From positions 142,662,001-142,726,000 of the forward strand of contig CM075977.1 in NCBI GenBank assembly GCA_038087875.1: a stretch of DNA of 64,000 nt, in the 5' to 3' direction. This document shows positions 1 to 42,215 of the stretch, piece after piece (the first letter of the stretch is position 1; each line of letters starts with the position of its first letter). A program made the translations under genes and the position numbers. The notes under the pieces were generated by a model. The model worked only from the letters and a program-made list of their open reading frames with translations. It did not search any database and was not told where the DNA came from. The stretch is from Malacoraja senta (lineage: Eukaryota).

Positions 1-551
1 TTTGGATATATACTGATTGACAATAGAAAAAAAAATTACATTATTTTGTTTTACATAGGCTCAATGGATTCCTTAAATTTATCAATTAAATTTAATGAAG
101 TACACAGCATCATAGAAAGAGGCCTTAATCATCTATGGAAACGTGTTAATAAATTCTCAGTAGCTGCTTTCTTACTGGTTGAAAGAAAGAAAATCAGAAA
201 ACGTACTGGTTTTGGAGAAGCAGCTTTTCATTCTATTCAGAATATTTAAACACATAACCCTATCGCCTTACATCTACCAGGTAGTTGCTTAAAGTATAAA
301 CTCATCATGCAGCGGTGCCTTCTGCCAGACACCAGGCTTTTTACTTGCATAAGCAAAGACCCAACACCTGTGTCAAGCCTCGCAATGCATGGCCAAGCTT
401 TGGCATATCCCAAGGTGGCAAACAACATACAGTTCATTAAGAACCCATATACCAGATGTATACCAGAGCCATTTACTGCTTACAAAATGAGTACCGAAGA
501 TACCAATTTCTCCACCATGATATCTAAATGTTCAATTTTTTGTAGTCTTAC

Positions 552-741
552 CGCATTCAAACCAGATAAATACAGAGCTCTTAGATTTTTCAAACTGGTC
601 ACTATCTGTATCAAACAAGGCGTTGTAAGCTTCGGGATTCGACCGATGTTCAGAATCTGCAGGTTTAAGCATTCCTGAGCCATGTGGGTCAAGCAGTGTG
701 TGTTTAGTTCATGACATCCAAACAGTTCCAGCTCTTTTAGA
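552..741 (-). CDS. F-box/LRR gene LRR exon (SLKELELFGCHELNTHCLTHMAQECLNLQILNIGRIPKLTTPCLIQIVTSLKNLRALYLSGLNA)
   Basis: Lies within ORF 480-785. cag acceptor and GCG|gtaaga donor. 190 nt, phase 2 in. Three LRR units. The gene presumably continues beyond the left edge. Confidence 0.9.
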
Positions 742-1377
742 CTGTGTACGGAAATAAAGATAACAATTAGATCCAATAGTGACATAGGCTTTTAATAAAA
801 TCATGCATGTTTGACCTTTCCTACTCTTCAATAACTGCGTATAGGGCCCAAGTTGAGTTAATTAGAGTCATTGTCACAAAGAACTGCACACAGAAAAAGG
901 CAGATGGCCTTTATGCCATACATCATGCCAAATTAAACTAATCCCATCTGCTTGCATATGATCTGGATCCCCCCCCATTCTGTATATTTTCATGTGCCTA
1001 TCTAAAAGCCTCCTAAATTATGGATCATCTTTGCTTCCACCACCACCACCGCTAAAAGCATGTTCCAGGCATTTAACAAAAGATTTGCCCCCCACATCTC
1101 CTTTAAACTTTGACCCTCTCAACTTAAAGATATGTCCTCTAGTATTTGATATTTCCGCCCTCAGCAGACTTGAATCTATTCGCTGTGATTCACTCATCCA
1201 AATTGTTAATAAAGATTGTGAACAGTTGTAGCCAATCCCCAGGGCATTGCAATTGTGACAGTCTCCTAACCGAAAATCTGTTTATTCCTCATCTATTTTC
1301 TGTCAAATAATCAGTCCTTAGTCTTCCCAGTATATTAGCCCTGATAGAGTGCACCCTAGTTTATTGAATAATTTTGT

Positions 1378-16387: not shown

Positions 16388-16501
16388 TGTTTCACTTACC
16401 TGCCTCAAGTTAATTGCAATGAATGGATGTAATCTGGAAAGCTGAGAATGAGGAAATTGTGTTTTTTTGGATGTTGAGGTTTCATTGTGATATATTTGTT
16501 A

Positions 16502-19271
16502 TCTATCTATACATAGATAACTAAAACTCTGATCTTGTGCTCTTCCAGTTTGCGTGGTTTATATCTATTTGCGCAAAAACGGTACACGATAGTGCTACGA
16601 TGTTTCGCCAACTTACTCACCATTCTCATGTGCCCGAGTGCAACAAGTTTTGTTCTGATCTATGGTATATTTTAAAAGTTATTAAGGTTTAAAAATCTTA
16701 CAAACCACGCAGGCACAGATTGGTCTCTTCTCCTTACAGTCAATGCCACGGCCGGGACAGCAATGCCCCTTCCTGCACCATTGCCGCACTGATTGGCCGT
16801 GTCCGCTGTCAGTCACCTGGAGGTCGCCACCAGCGTCGCAGTGAAGGAGTGGCGGCGGCCGGCGAGGTGGCGGCACCCAATGTGTTGCTGCAGCTGCCCG
16901 ACATGTTGGTGCGGCTGCCCGACTTGTTGCTGTGGGCTGTGCGGTACCTAGTGGGGAGGGTGGTGCGCAGGCCAAGCCCGGGGACTGAGCTCGGGCCCCG
17001 GCTGGAGCCAAGGATGAGCCCAGTGACTGGGCCTGGGCTGGAGCCAAGCCCGGGGCTGGAGCTGGAGTGAGGGCCGAGCACGGAGCTTGGGATGGGACCA
17101 TGACCGGGGCCGAGAAAGAAGCCGTGGCCTGGAACCAAGGACGAGCCTGGGTCCAGGGTCAGGGACGAGCCCGGAGATGAAGTCAGGGCCTGGACTGGAG
17201 CCCAAGCGGTGGCCAAGCTGAGGGCTGGAGTCATGCCCAAGCCCGGGGCCTGGGTCAAGGCCGAGCTGGGGGTCTGGAGTTATGCCGAAGCCCGATCCCT
17301 GGCACGTAGTCCACGGCTTCATGACGGACCGGCTGCGTAGCGTCCGCCAGGACAATGTGTCCCAGCGCCTCGGGGGCTGCCCGGCCACCGCCATCCTGGA
17401 GCACAACCTCCGCTTCCTGCTCTGCGGGCAGCTCTGGCTCGGCCGCCTGCCACCCTCACCCCCGCCCCCGGCACAGCGAGCCCTGCTCCGTCGAGGCTTG
17501 CAAATGCTTCGGCCGCCTGCTAGCCGCCTACAGCCAGGGCCGGGCCGAGTACAAGAACCAGGCCAAGTTCCAGGCCCTGGTGCTGCTCTACGACCTGGGT
17601 AGGTGCTGGGGCAGGGAATGGGAGTGAGGGGAGGAGGATGAGGGAATGGGGTGGCGGGAGATGGGGTGGGGAGTGGGGTGGTAGAGGGTGATGGGGAGTG
17701 TGGAGGAGAGAGATGGGGAGGGGTGGAGGAAGGCGTTGGGGTGGGGTGGTAGAGGGAGATGGGGGGGGGGTGGAGGAAAGAGAGTGGGGAGGTTGGAGGA
17801 GGGAGATGGGGAGGGAAGTGGGTGGAAAGGTGGGTGGGGTGAAGTAGGAAGATAAGGAGAGTGGGGTGGAAATGAAGGGGTGGAGGAGGGAGATGGGTCA
17901 AGTGGTGAATGAGGGAGATGGGGAGGGGTGAAGGAAGAAGGGGGGAGTGGGGTGGAGGAATGAGATGTGGAAGAGGTGAGGGGTGGAGAGGGAGATGTAT
18001 AGGGGCGGGGGAGTCGATGTGGAGTGGATAAGGGAGATGGAAAAGAGGTGATGTTGGAGGAGAAATATGGGGTGGGGGAGGGAATTGTGGTGGGAGAGTG
18101 AGCGGAGAGGACAGAGGGTGGAGAAGGGAGTTGGGGAGGGAGATGGGGCTAGAGTGTGGGATGAATGAAGGAGGTGAGGAATATAGTGGAGTGGATGAGG
18201 GAGATGGGGAGGGGTGGGGGAGGAAAATGGTGGGGAGTGGATTGGAGAGGGAGATGGGACGGAGGAGTTGATGGAGAGGGGTGAAAGTGTGAGGTGGATG
18301 AGGGAGTGGGGAGGTGAGGGAGCAAGATGAAGATGGGGTGGGGGAGTTGGGTGGAAGAGGTAGATGAGAGGGAAAGTGGTGTGAAGGATGGAGTGAGGTG
18401 GAGGAGCAAAATGCTTGAGGAGGCAGGTGGGGTGGGAGAGTGTGGTGAAAGAGGGAGTGGGGAAACACAGGGAGAGTGGAAAGTGAACATTTTAAAAATC
18501 TACGAATGTTGGCAGCCTAAAATAAAAACAGAAAATGCTCAGCGGGTCAGGCAGCATCTGTGGAGAGGGAGAATGAGAGGGCGGTTTGGGATAAGGGGTA
18601 GTAGGAGAGATGGGTGGTGATGCTGGAGAGATGTGGGGTAAGGGAGAGAGGACAGGTGGAGGTAGGGTGTGAAGGGTGAAGATGGAGAGGTGAGGGAGAG
18701 GAGGGGATGGGGCAGGAGGGTTGAAGATGGAGAGATGTGGGATAAGGGAGAGGGTGATAGTGGGAGAGATGGGGAGGAAGGGGTAATGGAAACGGTGATA
18801 GTGGGAATGTGAACCCTGGCTACCTTTGTGTGCAGTTAGCACAGACTCTGCCTCTACGCCCCCCCCCCCCCCCCGCCCAGGTCAGGAGGGATAGTGGGGG
18901 GGGATAGGGGGAGGTAAGGAGTGGGGGGAGGTGGACGATAGAGGGATAGGAGTGGGTAGGAAGGGGAGAGGAGTTATGGTGGGAGGGAGGGAGGGAGGGA
19001 GGGAGGGAGGGAGGGAGGGAGTGTGAGGGTAGAGAAAAGGAGAAGGAGGGATTGAGGGAGAGGATGAGGAGAGGGGAAAGAAGTGGGGGGATGAAGAGGA
19101 GGAAGAGAGAGGGAGTGCTGGGGATGAGGAGAAATGAGCTGCGCCAGTGCAGTTGGGGCTATGGGTGAGTGGTGGAATATTGCGTTGGGGGAACGGGTTG
19201 CGTTGGGGGAACAGGTGAGTGCTGGAATATTGCGCTGGGGAGCAGACCCAATGGGTCTGCACTTAATCTAG
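16502..19271 (+). mobile_element. Non-autonomous Helitron-like element H2 carrying a SAC3D1-like fragment
   Basis: 5' end a|TCtatct...ataactaaaactctgatcttg. 3' end is the gcagacccaatgggtctgc hairpin followed by acttaatCTAG|t. A|T target, no TSD. Confidence 0.85.
16870..17598 (+). pseudogene. SAC3D1: Captured, frameshifted SAC3/GANP-domain (SAC3D1-like) exon fragment
   Basis: Collinear peptides RLPDLLLWAVRYLVGRV, FMTDRLRSVRQD, ILEHNLRFLLC and CFGRLLAAY..QAKFQALVLLYDLG match SAC3D1 motifs recalled from memory. Ends at a G|GTAGGT donor-like site. Contains stops and frameshifts. Confidence 0.8.
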
Positions 19272-27705: not shown

Positions 27706-29023
27706 CTAGACCAAGTGGGAGCCGTTTGGTCCGGTTCCCCCAACGCAATATTCCAGCACTCACCCATAGCCCCCAACTGCGCAGGCACGGCTGAGGGGTT
27801 CCCGTTGTGACGCCAGAGATCCCCGTTTTGACGTGAGTCATGGGAAACCTGCCCCAACTGCGCCTCGCCATCCCTCTTCCTACCCCTATCCTTCTCCATT
27901 CCCCCTCAGCCCCAGCACTCTTTCCCCTCCCCTTCACTCTCTTCTTTCCCCTGTCCTCCTACCCTCCCCCACTCCCTCCCTCACCTCTCCCTTCTTTTTC
28001 CCCTACCCTCAGTCACTCCCACCATCCCTCCATAATCCCTCTCCCCTCCCTACCCCCCTCCTCTCCCTCTATCCCCTCTCCTCCCCAACTCTCCCTCCTC
28101 ACCTCCCCCACTTTCCCCTCCCTCTCCCTCCCTACCCCCCTCCTCTCCCTCAATCCCCCCACGCTCCCTCTGTAAACCACCGCTAGCCCCGTTTTCTCCA
28201 GCAGGGCAGCGATTAAGTCGTACTTGAGGCAGGGGCTGTCAGGGGGGGGCAGCGTCTTGGAGCCAGGGAAGGGGGAAGGCTTGAGGTGGGGCCTGTCAGG
28301 GGGATGGCGAGCATCCTGAACCAGAGGGAGGGGGAAGGCTTGCGGCCTGGAATGTTGAGGGGGTGCGCGAGCGTCCTGGAGGCTGGGGAGGGCTTGAGGC
28401 AGGGGCTGTCGTGGGGGGGCAGCGTCCTGGAGCCGGGGGAGGGGGAGGACTTGAGGCGGGGGCTATCGAGGGTTGGGAGACGAGCGTCCTGGAGCCGGGG
28501 GAGGGGGAGGGTTCGAGAGCGGGGGCTATCGGGGGGGGCGAGCGTCCTGGACCCAGGCAATGGGGAGGAGGAGCCCGAGGGTACCCGGCGCGGCCTCTCC
28601 CCGCCCCTGGTCCCCGCACTGGCTCCAACCCCAGCCCAGGCTAAGGGGGGCAGAAATTAAATAGGAACCTTACTCATGGAGCCGTCGGCTCGCCGTTGTG
28701 ACAGGAAAAAAAGGATGGCGGTCTGAAATTGTGCAAAGGCCGCGCTGAGGACCTGTGGGGTGTCCTTTATGACGCCTGTGACGTAAAGATAGCAAGTGGG
28801 GGCGGGGCAAGTGGGGGCACTGTTTTATTTCTTTAAAGTTTTAAACGTCAATAACTTGTAAAATATACCATCAATCTGAACGAAACTTGTTTAATTTACA
28901 TCACAGGACAATGGTATGGTGGGCCAAAAAATTGTAGCGCTATCATGTACAGTTTTTGCACAAATACTAACCGGGCAAACAAACGGACAAACAAACAAGG
29001 TGAGAGTTTTAGTAATATAGAGA
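27706..29023 (-). mobile_element. Non-autonomous Helitron-like element H4
   Basis: Minus strand reads a|TCtctatattactaaaactctc ... cacttggtCTAG|t. Subterminal block is shared with H2 and H5. Confidence 0.82.
28225..28555. repeat. ~55-58-bp GC-rich tandem repeat (inside H4; related degenerate array at 40560-40880 in H5)
   Basis: Recurrent ggcaggggctgtc...gcgtcctggagccggggga units. Confidence 0.75.
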
Positions 29024-29086
29024 TAGAGATGAATGCCAATTTCAAAAGAGAAGAACTAACCGGACCAAAAAAAAATCTGTTTGTAC

Positions 29087-39575: not shown

Positions 39576-41146
39576 CATCTTGTTCTCTTCCGTTTGCATT
39601 GTTTTTAAATTTGCGCAAAAGTGGTATGCGATAGCGCTACGATTTTTCGCCACGTTACTCACCATTCTCCTGTGCTGCAAGTGCACCAAGTTTTCTACTG
39701 ATCGGTGACATATTTCAAATGTTATGAAGGTTTAAATATCGTAAAAACCGCCCCTTCCGACACCCGCTGTCAATCGGCGGTGAGGAGAATAAAGCTGAAG
39801 GAGCAGAGTGAGCAGAGTGTGGAGAGCGAGTTGGGGGCTTGTGTCGGCCATGGCGACGAGCCGGTGAGTGAGTGTGGCTGGGAGTCGCAGAGTGCGGCCG
39901 GGACCCGCTGAGTGAGTGCGGCCAGGAGCCGCTGAGTGAGTGCGGCCGGGAGACAGAAAGTGAGTGCAGCCAGGAGCCGCTGAGTGAGTGCGCCCAGGAG
40001 CCTGTGAGTGAGTGCGGCCGGGAGCCATTGAGTGAGTGCGGCCGGGAGCCGTTGAGTGAGTGCAGCCGGGAGCCGCTCAGTGAGTGCGGCCGGGAGACAG
40101 GAAGTGAGTGCGCCCGAGAGGCGATGAGTGAGTACAGCCGGGAGCCGCTGAGTGAGTGCGGCCAGGAGCTGTAGAGTGAGTACGGCCGGGAGCCGCAGAG
40201 TGAGTGTGGCCGGGAGCCGAGAGCCGTTGAGTGAGTGCGGCACCCCCCCACCCCCCACACACACACCCCTTCCCCCCTCCCACACACCCCTTCCCCCCTC
40301 CCACACATACCTTTTCCCCTCCTCCCACAAACACCCCTTCCCCCTCCCACACACACCACATCCCCTCCCCCCACACACACCCCCTCCCCCCATCATGCCT
40401 CCCACCAACACACCCCTCCCCTCCCACACCTCTCCCCTCCCACCACACAACCCTCTCCTCCCACCACACACAGCGATAGGCCATGGCAGCGGTAGGCCGC
40501 GACAGTGGTTGGCCACGACAGCGGTAGGCAGTGGCAGCGGCTGGCAGTGGCAGCGGCAGTCCAGGGCAGCGCTCCCCCCGCTCCCCGACAGGCCCCGCTT
40601 GAAGCTGTCCCCCACCCCAGGCTGCAGGATGCTCCCCACCAGCCCCCGCCTAAAGCCGTCCCTGTCCCCGGCTACAGAACGCTCCCGCCGCCCCACGCCT
40701 GAAGCCGTCCACGTCCCCAGCTGCAGGACACTTCTCCCCTCATCAGCACCCGACAGCCCCCTCCTGAAGCCGTCCCCATCCCCCGGCTGCAGGACGCCCC
40801 TCCCCCAGCTGCAGGTTGATCCCCTACCAGCTCTGAAAGCCCCTGCCAGAAGCCATCCCCCTCCCCCGGCTGCAGGACACTCAGGACGCTCACTCCCCAC
40901 CGCACCGGCCACTAAGAGTGGATGGGGGGGTTGAGGGAGGTGCGTGGGGGGGGTGGGGGGGGTGGGGTGGCAAGGGGCGGAGTGGGAGGGGAGGTGAGGG
41001 GAGGAGGGGGGGATCAGGAGCATCACAATGGGAACCCGTCAGCCACACCTGTGCAGTTGGGGGCTATGGATGAGTGGTGGAATATTGCATTGGGGGATCA
41101 GGCCTCCCATTTGAGAATGGGACCCAACAGGTCCCACTTAGTCTGG
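39576..41146 (+). mobile_element. Non-autonomous Helitron-like element H5 (5' tip in gap)
   Basis: 5' body is homologous to H2. 3' end is the gggacc-caaca-ggtccc hairpin followed by acttagtCTGG|t (CTRR). Confidence 0.8.
39860..40240. repeat. ~24-bp minisatellite (inside H5)
   Basis: Unit gagtgagtgcggccgggagccgct, about 15-16 copies. Confidence 0.9.
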
Positions 41147-42215
41147 TACATAACTAAAGCTCTGATCTTGTTATCTTCCGGTTTGCGCGGTTATTCTATT
41201 TGCGCCAAAAACGGTATGCGATAGCACTACGATTTTTTGCCAGCTTACTCGCCGTTCTCCTGAGCTGCAATTGCTCCAAGTTTTGTTCCGATCGGTGGTC
41301 TAATGTAAAAGTTAGCAATGTTTACAAAATCTTAAAAACCGCACATGCACAGATCGATCTCCTCTCCTGCCGTTCAGCATCACGTGGATTGGTCTTTTCT
41401 CCTGTCACTCCACGGGACAGTCCGCCCCTTCCTGCGCCATCGCGTCTTTACTGGAGCTGAGGGAGGCTCTGGATGGCCGGCGGAGGTCTCCAACTGGACA
41501 CAATTTTCAGAGGGAGATTGGGTCGGGGACCCGACCCGAAGCAGCCCAGCATTGGAGACCCAGCCCAGCATCGGAGACCCAGCCCAGCCCAGAGTCGGAA
41601 ATGTCGCCGATGTCACCAAACGGAAAACGGAGGCTCTGATCCCGGCAGAGGAGGACGACCAGCACCCGCTGTGAGTCTCCATCCAAATGTCAGCTGCAGC
41701 CACTTCCCCTCTGGTCCCCCTCGCTGGCTCCTGCCCCCCTCCCCCGTGATACTACCCTCTCCCCACAACCCCCGTCTTTTCTCTGAGCTCCCTCACCCCT
41801 TCCACAACCCTCCCCACCCACACCCCTCCCGCTCCCACACCCCACGCGCCCACACCCCGCCCGCCCACACCCCAGCCCGCCCACACCCCAGCCGCCCACA
41901 CCCCCCCCCCTCCACAGCCCCCCTCTCCCACAACCCCACACCCCCACCCCTCCCCCACACACCCACCCCTCTTGGACACATTTCTTCATGTCCCCATCGC
42001 AACGTCAGCTGCAGCCACTTCCCCTCTGGTCCCCCTCGCTGGCTCCTGCCCCCCTCCCCCGTGATACTACCCTCTCCCCCACAAACCCCATATTTTCTCC
42101 AAGCTCTCTCTCCCCCCACAACCCCCCTGCCACACCGCTCCCGCCCACACCCCACCCCCTCCATTGCCCACACCCCCCCGCCACACCCCACCCACATCCC
42201 CCTCCCCCATCGCTT
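41147..42215 (+). mobile_element. Helitron-like element H6 (3'-truncated), abutting H5
   Basis: Begins ataactaaagctctgatcttg, homologous to the H2 5' end. No 3' hairpin seen. Confidence 0.72.

Follow-up and report, generated by a model that had tools for sequence, protein, structure and literature searches.

A non-autonomous Helitron carrying exon and intron DNA of a SAC3D1-like gene in the skate Malacoraja senta

Introduction

How does part of a SAC3D1-like gene come to lie within a repeated element of a skate genome, and how much of the gene is there? The question is raised by a stretch of 64,000 nucleotides from Malacoraja senta (GenBank assembly GCA_038087875.1, contig CM075977.1, positions 142,662,001 to 142,726,000 of the forward strand), here called the window and numbered from its first letter. 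A first-pass annotation, made from the sequence without database searches, described a Helitron that carries a disabled SAC3D1-like coding exon together with its splice donor, and proposed that this DNA had been captured directly and not by way of an mRNA. The analysis presented here shows that window 16506-19271 is a non-autonomous Helitron (a rolling-circle transposon), and very probably its internal region is host SAC3D1(-like) DNA which runs from around codon 26-27 of exon 1 through the splice donor and the whole of intron 1 to its final AG. This internal region is called the cargo below, while the terminal regions on each side of it are called the head and the tail.

The SAC3D1 Cargo

The coding sequence is found as three peptide pieces in three frames: RLPDLLLWAVRYLVGRV at 16912-16962, PWHVVHGFMTDRLRSVRQD...LRFLLC at 17297-17452, and ...CFGRLLAAY...QAKFQALVLLYDLG at 17451-17600. 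They are present in successive frames, and the block ends at G|GTAGGT, as claimed at the outset. The second piece matches the Pfam family SAC3_GANP (PF03399) with an E-value of 1.1e-8 and 35.3 bits (cut-off 27) over profile positions 76-122. The third stays below the threshold (E 0.058), and it covers profile positions 143-178, which is the part of the profile expected to come next. The stretch matching SAC3_GANP above the cut-off is window 17282-17599, and the cargo as a whole spans profile positions ~70-179 of 289. The first piece is too short for a protein test of its own and was confirmed by DNA alignment to exon 1 of the gene described below.

A profile made from the stop-free pieces of three copies of the element was run against a set of 1.84 billion representative proteins and retrieved 44 of them; all eight that were tested carry a significant SAC3_GANP domain. 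The top match (E 1.9e-48, 178.8 bits) is XP_078252027.1 of the skate Rhinoraja longicauda, a protein of 444 aa which NCBI names SAC3 domain-containing protein 1-like and which has a full SAC3_GANP domain (E 4.7e-69). The second match, SAC3D1, comes from a manta ray, Mobula birostris, and the best relatives of the cargo are all named SAC3 domain-containing protein 1. The Pfam match and the profile match to the skate protein together bear out the SAC3D1-like nature of the cargo; the comparison with the SAC3_GANP family that the first-pass annotation had proposed is significant, and the possibility it had left that there is no such hit falls away.

The R. longicauda SAC3D1-like gene was retrieved twice, on a 6.6-kb contig (L040) and at a chromosomal locus (L057), and the two are 99.7% identical. 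The gene has two coding exons separated by a phase-1 intron of ~4.4-4.7 kb, which follows ...LYDLG and begins G|GTAGGT. Intron 1 opens with a long G-rich minisatellite, and exon 2 accounts for residues 284-444 of the protein. At the DNA level the gene and window 16817-18878 are collinear, starting from codon ~26-27 (L040:559). The gene-derived DNA therefore extends from 16817 to ~18880 and is larger than the block that had been described earlier.

The exon 1 remnant (16817..17598, plus strand) reaches from about codon 27 to the last base of the exon and could be aligned end to end with L040:559-1330 (782 vs 772 nt) at 79.6% identity with 15 indels, at least nine of which shift the frame. Inside it, at ~16974-17296 on the plus strand, lies the internal tandem repeat of the gene itself. 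Since the parent gene has the same repeat, the repetitive stretch between the first and the second peptide piece is not an insertion. In the SAC3D1-like protein of R. longicauda, exon 1 encodes a tandem repeat of ~100 aa (P0001 residues 75-180, L040:703-1020), with units like VVPEPRVGAQATAEPGAR, and this repeat is missing from the M. birostris SAC3D1 model. Because the Helitron cargo carries it, the capture postdates the expansion of the repeat.

No complete SAC3_GANP domain in an open frame is found, as the cargo holds only the exon 1 part with neither a start codon nor exon 2. Compared with SAC3D1 (SHD1), a small protein of the SAC3/GANP family, it is without the 26 N-terminal codons and without the whole half of the domain that exon 2 encodes, and it is frameshifted; the promoter is not in the cargo either. 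The cargo is thus a gene fragment and not a functional SAC3D1 gene. The frame-shifting indels relative to the skate exon, the missing codons 1-26 and exon 2, and the neutral decay of the copies (see below) all agree with its having been called disabled.

The Captured Intron

The captured 5' splice donor, GTAGGT (phase-1, G|GT), is found at 17599..17604 on the plus strand, and both the hexamer and its position match the junction between exon 1 and intron 1 in the two R. longicauda sequences. The G|GTAGGT at 17598|17599 is accordingly a donor at a true exon boundary, which was one of the initial proposals. From here the captured intron 1 (1.28 kb) continues to 18880, and window 17607-18784 is 75% identical to L040:1938-3094. 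All parts of the intron are on the plus strand. A G-rich minisatellite occupies ~17610-18470 and 18560-18800, and an abundant piece resembling a short interspersed element (SINE) is found at ~18470-18620. The 3' end of the intron is unique sequence with a polypyrimidine tract (18816-18878), and it is followed by the acceptor AG at 18879-18880, after which the Helitron tail begins. Window 18816-18873 is 86% identical to L040:5974-6029, the last 56 nt of the parent intron, directly before exon 2. The parent intron is longer (~4.7 kb), partly through a long interspersed element (LINE) and a SINE piece that are missing from the window copy.

The element consequently holds intron 1 in its entirety, polypyrimidine tract and AG included, and the case for capture at the DNA level is stronger than first thought.

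The SINE-like piece at 18521-18621 (...AAAATGCTCAGCGGGTCAGGCAGCATCTGTGGAGAG...) is hyper-abundant in all four sequencing runs compared. A piece related to it (L040:5900-5970) is found more than 2,000 times in the genome.

The Helitron and its Termini

The ends of the element were defined by aligning copies within the genome that the window comes from. The similarity between copies elsewhere and the window stops exactly at 16506 and 19271, with unrelated flanks beyond, and the whole element (2,766 bp, plus strand) is placed between an A (16505) and a T (19272) without a target-site duplication. The 5' end is TC and reads TCTATACATA...ACTAAAACTCTG from 16506. This TC start was aligned across 19 copies; most of the 18 other copies share it and have unrelated flanks there, and the preceding base is an A in most copies. 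Due to a TCTA repeat the 5' start is somewhat ambiguous, and 16502 is possible too.

Close to the end of the head (16506..16816, plus strand), ~25 nt before it, there is an inverted CCAAT motif (CTGATTGGCC), a putative promoter motif as read from the sequence. The head is 72-88% identical to the heads of other copies, whether these bear cargo or not. Cargo-free copies part from the window sequence at 16816-16820, and the similarity of two of them, L005 and L009, resumes at 18879. The tail is assigned to 18881..19271 on the plus strand. On the same strand it includes a G-rich minisatellite, (GGGA)10 (18981-19021), and 18-bp repeats (19180-19216), and it closes with CTAG (19268-19271). Before the CTAG there is a hairpin (19242-19260), made of an 8-bp stem with a 3-nt loop and placed 11 nt from the 3' end. 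It folds with -8.9 kcal/mol (z -4.0), and none of 200 shuffled sequences folds as well. A hairpin and a CTAG terminus are found in 13 of the 14 other copies fetched, while the last one (L005) ends in CTAA; each has unrelated flanks, and a T follows directly after the terminus in all 14, L005 included. Most non-autonomous copies have the hairpin variant GGGACCC/GGGTCCC, whereas the window copy has CAGACCC/GGGTCTG. The two differ at two base pairs that are changed on both sides, and the stem is thereby kept.

The Helitron_like_N domain has 112 matches in the window genome. One of the loci is an 8.85-kb autonomous Helitron (L058:378-9224, corresponding to G000:C4719:107877-116723) with an uninterrupted open reading frame (ORF) of 1706 aa for RepHel, in which an HUH Rep is joined to a PIF1-like helicase. 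The ORF contains Helitron_like_N (E 7.5e-57), PIF1 (E 1.4e-68), and Pif1 2B, and the domain scan of this ORF reported no endonuclease domain. The last ~40 nt of the autonomous element are those of the window element, including the CAGACCC variant of the hairpin. At the 5' end the two have in common only a motif of ~20 nt, TATA..AAAACTCT, and beyond this terminal motif no homology was found between the heads of the non-autonomous family and the autonomous elements. Open frames of 1300-1766 aa were seen at several other loci. As RepHel elements with intact ORFs exist, the Helitron family may still be active.

With its 5' TC, its 3' CTRR preceded by a hairpin, an insertion between A and T without duplication, many copies, and a RepHel partner with a matching terminus, window 16506-19271 is a canonical (5'-TC/CTAG-3') non-autonomous Helitron, and the identification of the carrier by the first-pass annotation is confirmed.

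Copies, Subfamilies, and Decay

When the genome that the window comes from was searched at the DNA level, window 16500-16820, parts of 16900-17260, and 17346-17650 were found to recur at many loci, separately or together. The cargo used as a DNA query gave 767 first-look candidates, and the 40 that were scored all match, at 81-86% identity. With the skate protein as query 1827 candidates were obtained; all 95 scored match, every one within residues 71-285 and none in exon 2. Counted as scored matches among the candidates, at least 95 loci thus carry a SAC3D1 fragment.

Many of the cargo copies share the same two cargo junctions. Their cargo-free relatives have the head to ~16816 and the tail from 18879, with other GC-rich inserts between. 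In several other subfamilies (L009:1814-1940, L012:1786-2090, L005:700-1502 on the minus strand, L016, and L006) the head continues to ...CCGCTGTCAGTCAC and is then followed by different GC-rich inserts. The insert of one subfamily ends ...CTGGGGAG|GTGAGG, like a junction between an exon and a donor. The position at the end of the head looks like a recurrent acquisition site.

Around 20 cargo copies were examined for the segments they have retained. A stretch of 89 bp (17261-17349), coding for ...VHGFMTDRLRSVRQD including DRLRSVRQD, is kept only by the window copy, L002, and L003. Parent-like codons near the 5' junction (...ATSVAVKEW) are found only in the window copy and in L004, and an 11-nt stretch (CFGRLLAAY) that the window copy has kept is lost from the main subfamily. 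Over the last ~250 nt of exon 1 and the first 90 nt of the intron the cargo copies are ~88% identical to each other and 83-88% identical to the skate gene. Their tree is star-like, with a median terminal branch of 0.068, and the parent gene groups weakly with the undeleted copies, i.e., the window copy, L002, and L003. Between pairs of copies, first, second, and third codon positions differ by 0.143, 0.106, and 0.127, respectively, and the intron by 0.105. The coding part of the cargo is broken and evolves without codon constraint, that is, by neutral decay.

Three further heads of the same superfamily are found in the window, at 28839-29027 (minus strand), 39577-39749 (plus strand), and 41147-41368 (plus strand). 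They are 72-81% identical to 16506-16734 and have no SAC3D1 cargo. A stretch resembling a Helitron head is also present in R. longicauda ~230 nt downstream of the stop codon of the SAC3D1-like gene (L057:11965-12156). It is 75.6% identical to window 28833-29025 (minus strand) and 67.8% identical to the head of the element studied here. Given the density of such elements, its position is probably due to chance.

Some Helitrons follow one another head to tail, the 5' end of the second coming immediately after the CTAG of the first (L058:377|378, and L005 around 1805), and on one contig (G000:C535:11231-19073) three cargo-bearing copies follow each other with a spacing of 3.54 kb. This suggests tandem (multimer) insertion or local duplication.

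Alternative Origins of the Fragment

Some observations weigh against the account given above. The first is that the parent gene used for comparison is that of R. longicauda, a related skate, which stood in for the species' own SAC3D1. A search for the PF03399 family in the window assembly matched only three Helitron copies. SAC3D1 exon 2 searched as protein gave no match in this assembly (1.94 Gb) when all 21 candidates were scored, exon 2 searched as DNA gave no candidates, and residues 1-75 gave no match; two further DNA queries for the parent gene drew mostly SINE pieces. The species' own SAC3D1 was thus not found with these queries, which does not mean that it is absent from the genome. 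Because its exon 2 was not found, the direction and the timing of the capture rest on the gene of a relative. In R. longicauda the same gene is also found on a small unplaced contig, and a GC-rich SAC3D1 locus that bears a minisatellite may be hard to assemble.

The second concerns the frameshift by a single base at 17458-17459. It falls within a run of C for which there is no exact independent contig, and it could be an assembly error; the many other frame-breaking indels are independent of it. Contigs of the independent run X1 are identical to window 16788-17083, which spans the junction between head and cargo, and to 17234-17391, the DRLRSVRQD region, while contigs from runs of other organisms contain copies that are 90-95% similar. 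The sequencing-run contigs compared with the window are dominated by paralogous copies.

The remaining two concern the window copy itself. Its head is 83-88% identical to the cargo-free copies, compared with 72-78% to most of the cargo-bearing ones, and its 5' junction reads ...GTCAC|CTGG, in the form of the cargo-free ...GTCAGTCAC, where the others have ...AATCGG|CTGG. It is therefore possible, though less likely than not, that the window copy is a secondary product of recombination or gene conversion, in which a cargo-free head was combined with the cargo of an early cargo-bearing copy. However, the parent-like codons ...ATSVAVKEW shared with L004 and the CFGRLLAAY stretch of the window copy fit an early branch equally simply, and the tree is too star-like to separate an early branch from recombination.

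It might also be asked whether the transfer went in the opposite direction, with a Helitron as the source of exon 1 or of intron sequence in the skate SAC3D1-like gene. Similar G-rich minisatellites are indeed found in the tail and in the intron (window 18885-19077 is 69.7% identical to L040:1408-1602), and the Helitron-head-like stretch after the stop codon in R. longicauda could be seen in the same light. Yet with four heads in the 64-kb window, one near the gene is expected by chance, and there are no Helitron termini inside the gene. SAC3D1 of manta ray and of teleosts, which has a full SAC3_GANP domain, moreover shows conservation of the exon 1 coding sequence, and the exon therefore predates the element. 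For the exon this conservation refutes the reverse direction, and overall we consider it very improbable.

That the locus is instead the true SAC3D1 locus, misassembled or degraded in place and mistaken for a Helitron, has next to no probability. In its favor, exon 1 is followed by intron 1 as it should be and the splice signals are correct, and as mentioned above the gene was not found elsewhere in the window assembly. However, the fragment comes without codons 1-26, promoter, or exon 2, and what borders it on its two sides is Helitron head and tail. It recurs with the same junctions at 95 or more loci, and there is no synteny: apart from interspersed repeats, the window has nothing in common with the flanks of the R. 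longicauda locus. Together the missing parts, the copy number with its shared junctions, and the lack of synteny exclude this explanation.

A processed SAC3D1 pseudogene that merely happens to lie inside a repeat is just as hard to credit, for although the fragment is frameshifted and without promoter like many retrocopies, it contains all of intron 1, from the donor and the minisatellite to the polypyrimidine tract and AG, which excludes a retrocopy, its edges are internal Helitron junctions and not target-site duplications, and the poly(A) tail that together with the other two features would mark such a pseudogene is missing.

Proposed History and Mechanism of Capture

Under capture of SAC3D1 DNA by the Helitron, the fragment would have been acquired once. 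The composite element may then have been multiplied in trans by the RepHel protein of autonomous Helitrons with the shared 3' terminus; mobilization in trans is suggested by the termini that the two have in common, i.e., the 3' terminus and the short 5' motif. Successive deletions would have given rise to the major subfamily, with a loss of 9 nt, then of the 89 bp that include DRLRSVRQD, and then of 11 nt. The window copy, L002, L003, and L004 would in that case be relics of earlier and more complete stages.

The fragment would most likely have entered a Helitron that was already there, by template switching or by 'filler DNA' repair. Both junctions show short microhomology (AGGT on the 3' side and, in most copies, CGG on the 5' side), and this, together with the different inserts that the subfamilies have at the same head position, favors repair or template switching. 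Read-through at the 3' end is the capture model supported for the bat elements discussed below (PMC4778049). In the skate element the cargo is internal, placed between a family-specific head and tail without an internal 3' terminus, and simple 3' read-through is therefore insufficient alone. A Helitron residing inside the parent gene was also considered as the capture route and was rejected, as there are no termini in the gene body of L057.

The fragment makes no SAC3D1 protein, and where copies are inserted they could at most donate a donor/acceptor pair or antisense RNA. There is a slight chance that the family constitutes a mobile 'first exon plus intron' cassette, made up of a CCAAT-type head, an exon remnant with its donor intact, a full intron, and an acceptor. 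If so, such a cassette at hundreds of sites could create chimeric or antisense transcripts, and small RNAs derived from it could act back on the parental SAC3D1.

Relation to Known Helitron Captures

Among known cases the closest is HelibatN3, an element of Myotis bats that has captured the promoter, six codons, and the splice donor of NUBPL (PMC4778049). The Helraiser/Helibat elements have 5'-TC/CTAG-3' ends, and their palindrome is placed 11 nt from the end (PMC4778049). HelibatN3 and the skate element are both animal Helitrons with such ends and with a palindrome at this distance upstream of the 3' end, and in both the 5' part of a gene with its splice donor has been captured and the composite amplified to many copies. 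They differ in that the skate cargo starts inside exon 1, without the parental promoter or start codon, and in that it is much longer, comprising ~257 codons' worth of exon and a complete intron with its acceptor. The host is in this case a batoid fish. HelibatN3 drives chimeric transcripts; for the skate element, no RNA run was found that contains the stretch.

With the gene-fragment Helitrons of maize (PMC2575219, PMC4528327) the skate element shares the capture of exon and intron at the DNA level, the pseudogenic state of the cargo, and probably amplification by autonomous partners. The maize Helitrons often join fragments of several genes, whereas the skate element contains a single contiguous fragment of one gene. 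A full-text literature search found no paper that mentions Helitrons together with SAC3D1, and a search for Helitrons in cartilaginous fishes gave nothing relevant among the 15 best-ranked matches.

The case is a well-supported example of a known process, transposon gene capture, in a little-studied lineage. It leaves our knowledge of how Helitrons work unchanged, but documents gene capture by a Helitron in a cartilaginous fish with both junctions mapped to a few bases. For annotation it means that in skate genomes hundreds of SAC3D1-like fragments with good splice signals could be mistaken for genes or exons. The amplification of the family also has a built-in timeline, given by the intron in the cargo and the stepwise deletions.

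Other Coding Sequence in the Window

Six long ORFs of the window were compared with Pfam, and only the one at 483-785 on the minus strand gives matches, which are weak and to leucine-rich repeats (LRR). A phmmer scan of all six-frame ORFs gave no further LRR exon in the window, and in the ORF scans this is the only coding piece detected beside the Helitron, from which it is separated by 15.7 kb. For the host gene to which the first-pass annotation took the Helitron to be antisense, it is the sole candidate. The ORF (483-791, minus strand) is of the F-box/LRR type, with matches to FBXL2 in the PDB (6o60_C, E 2.4e-8) and to FBXL17 (4e-5). It probably represents one exon of a gene of the FBXL family that lies at the window's left edge.

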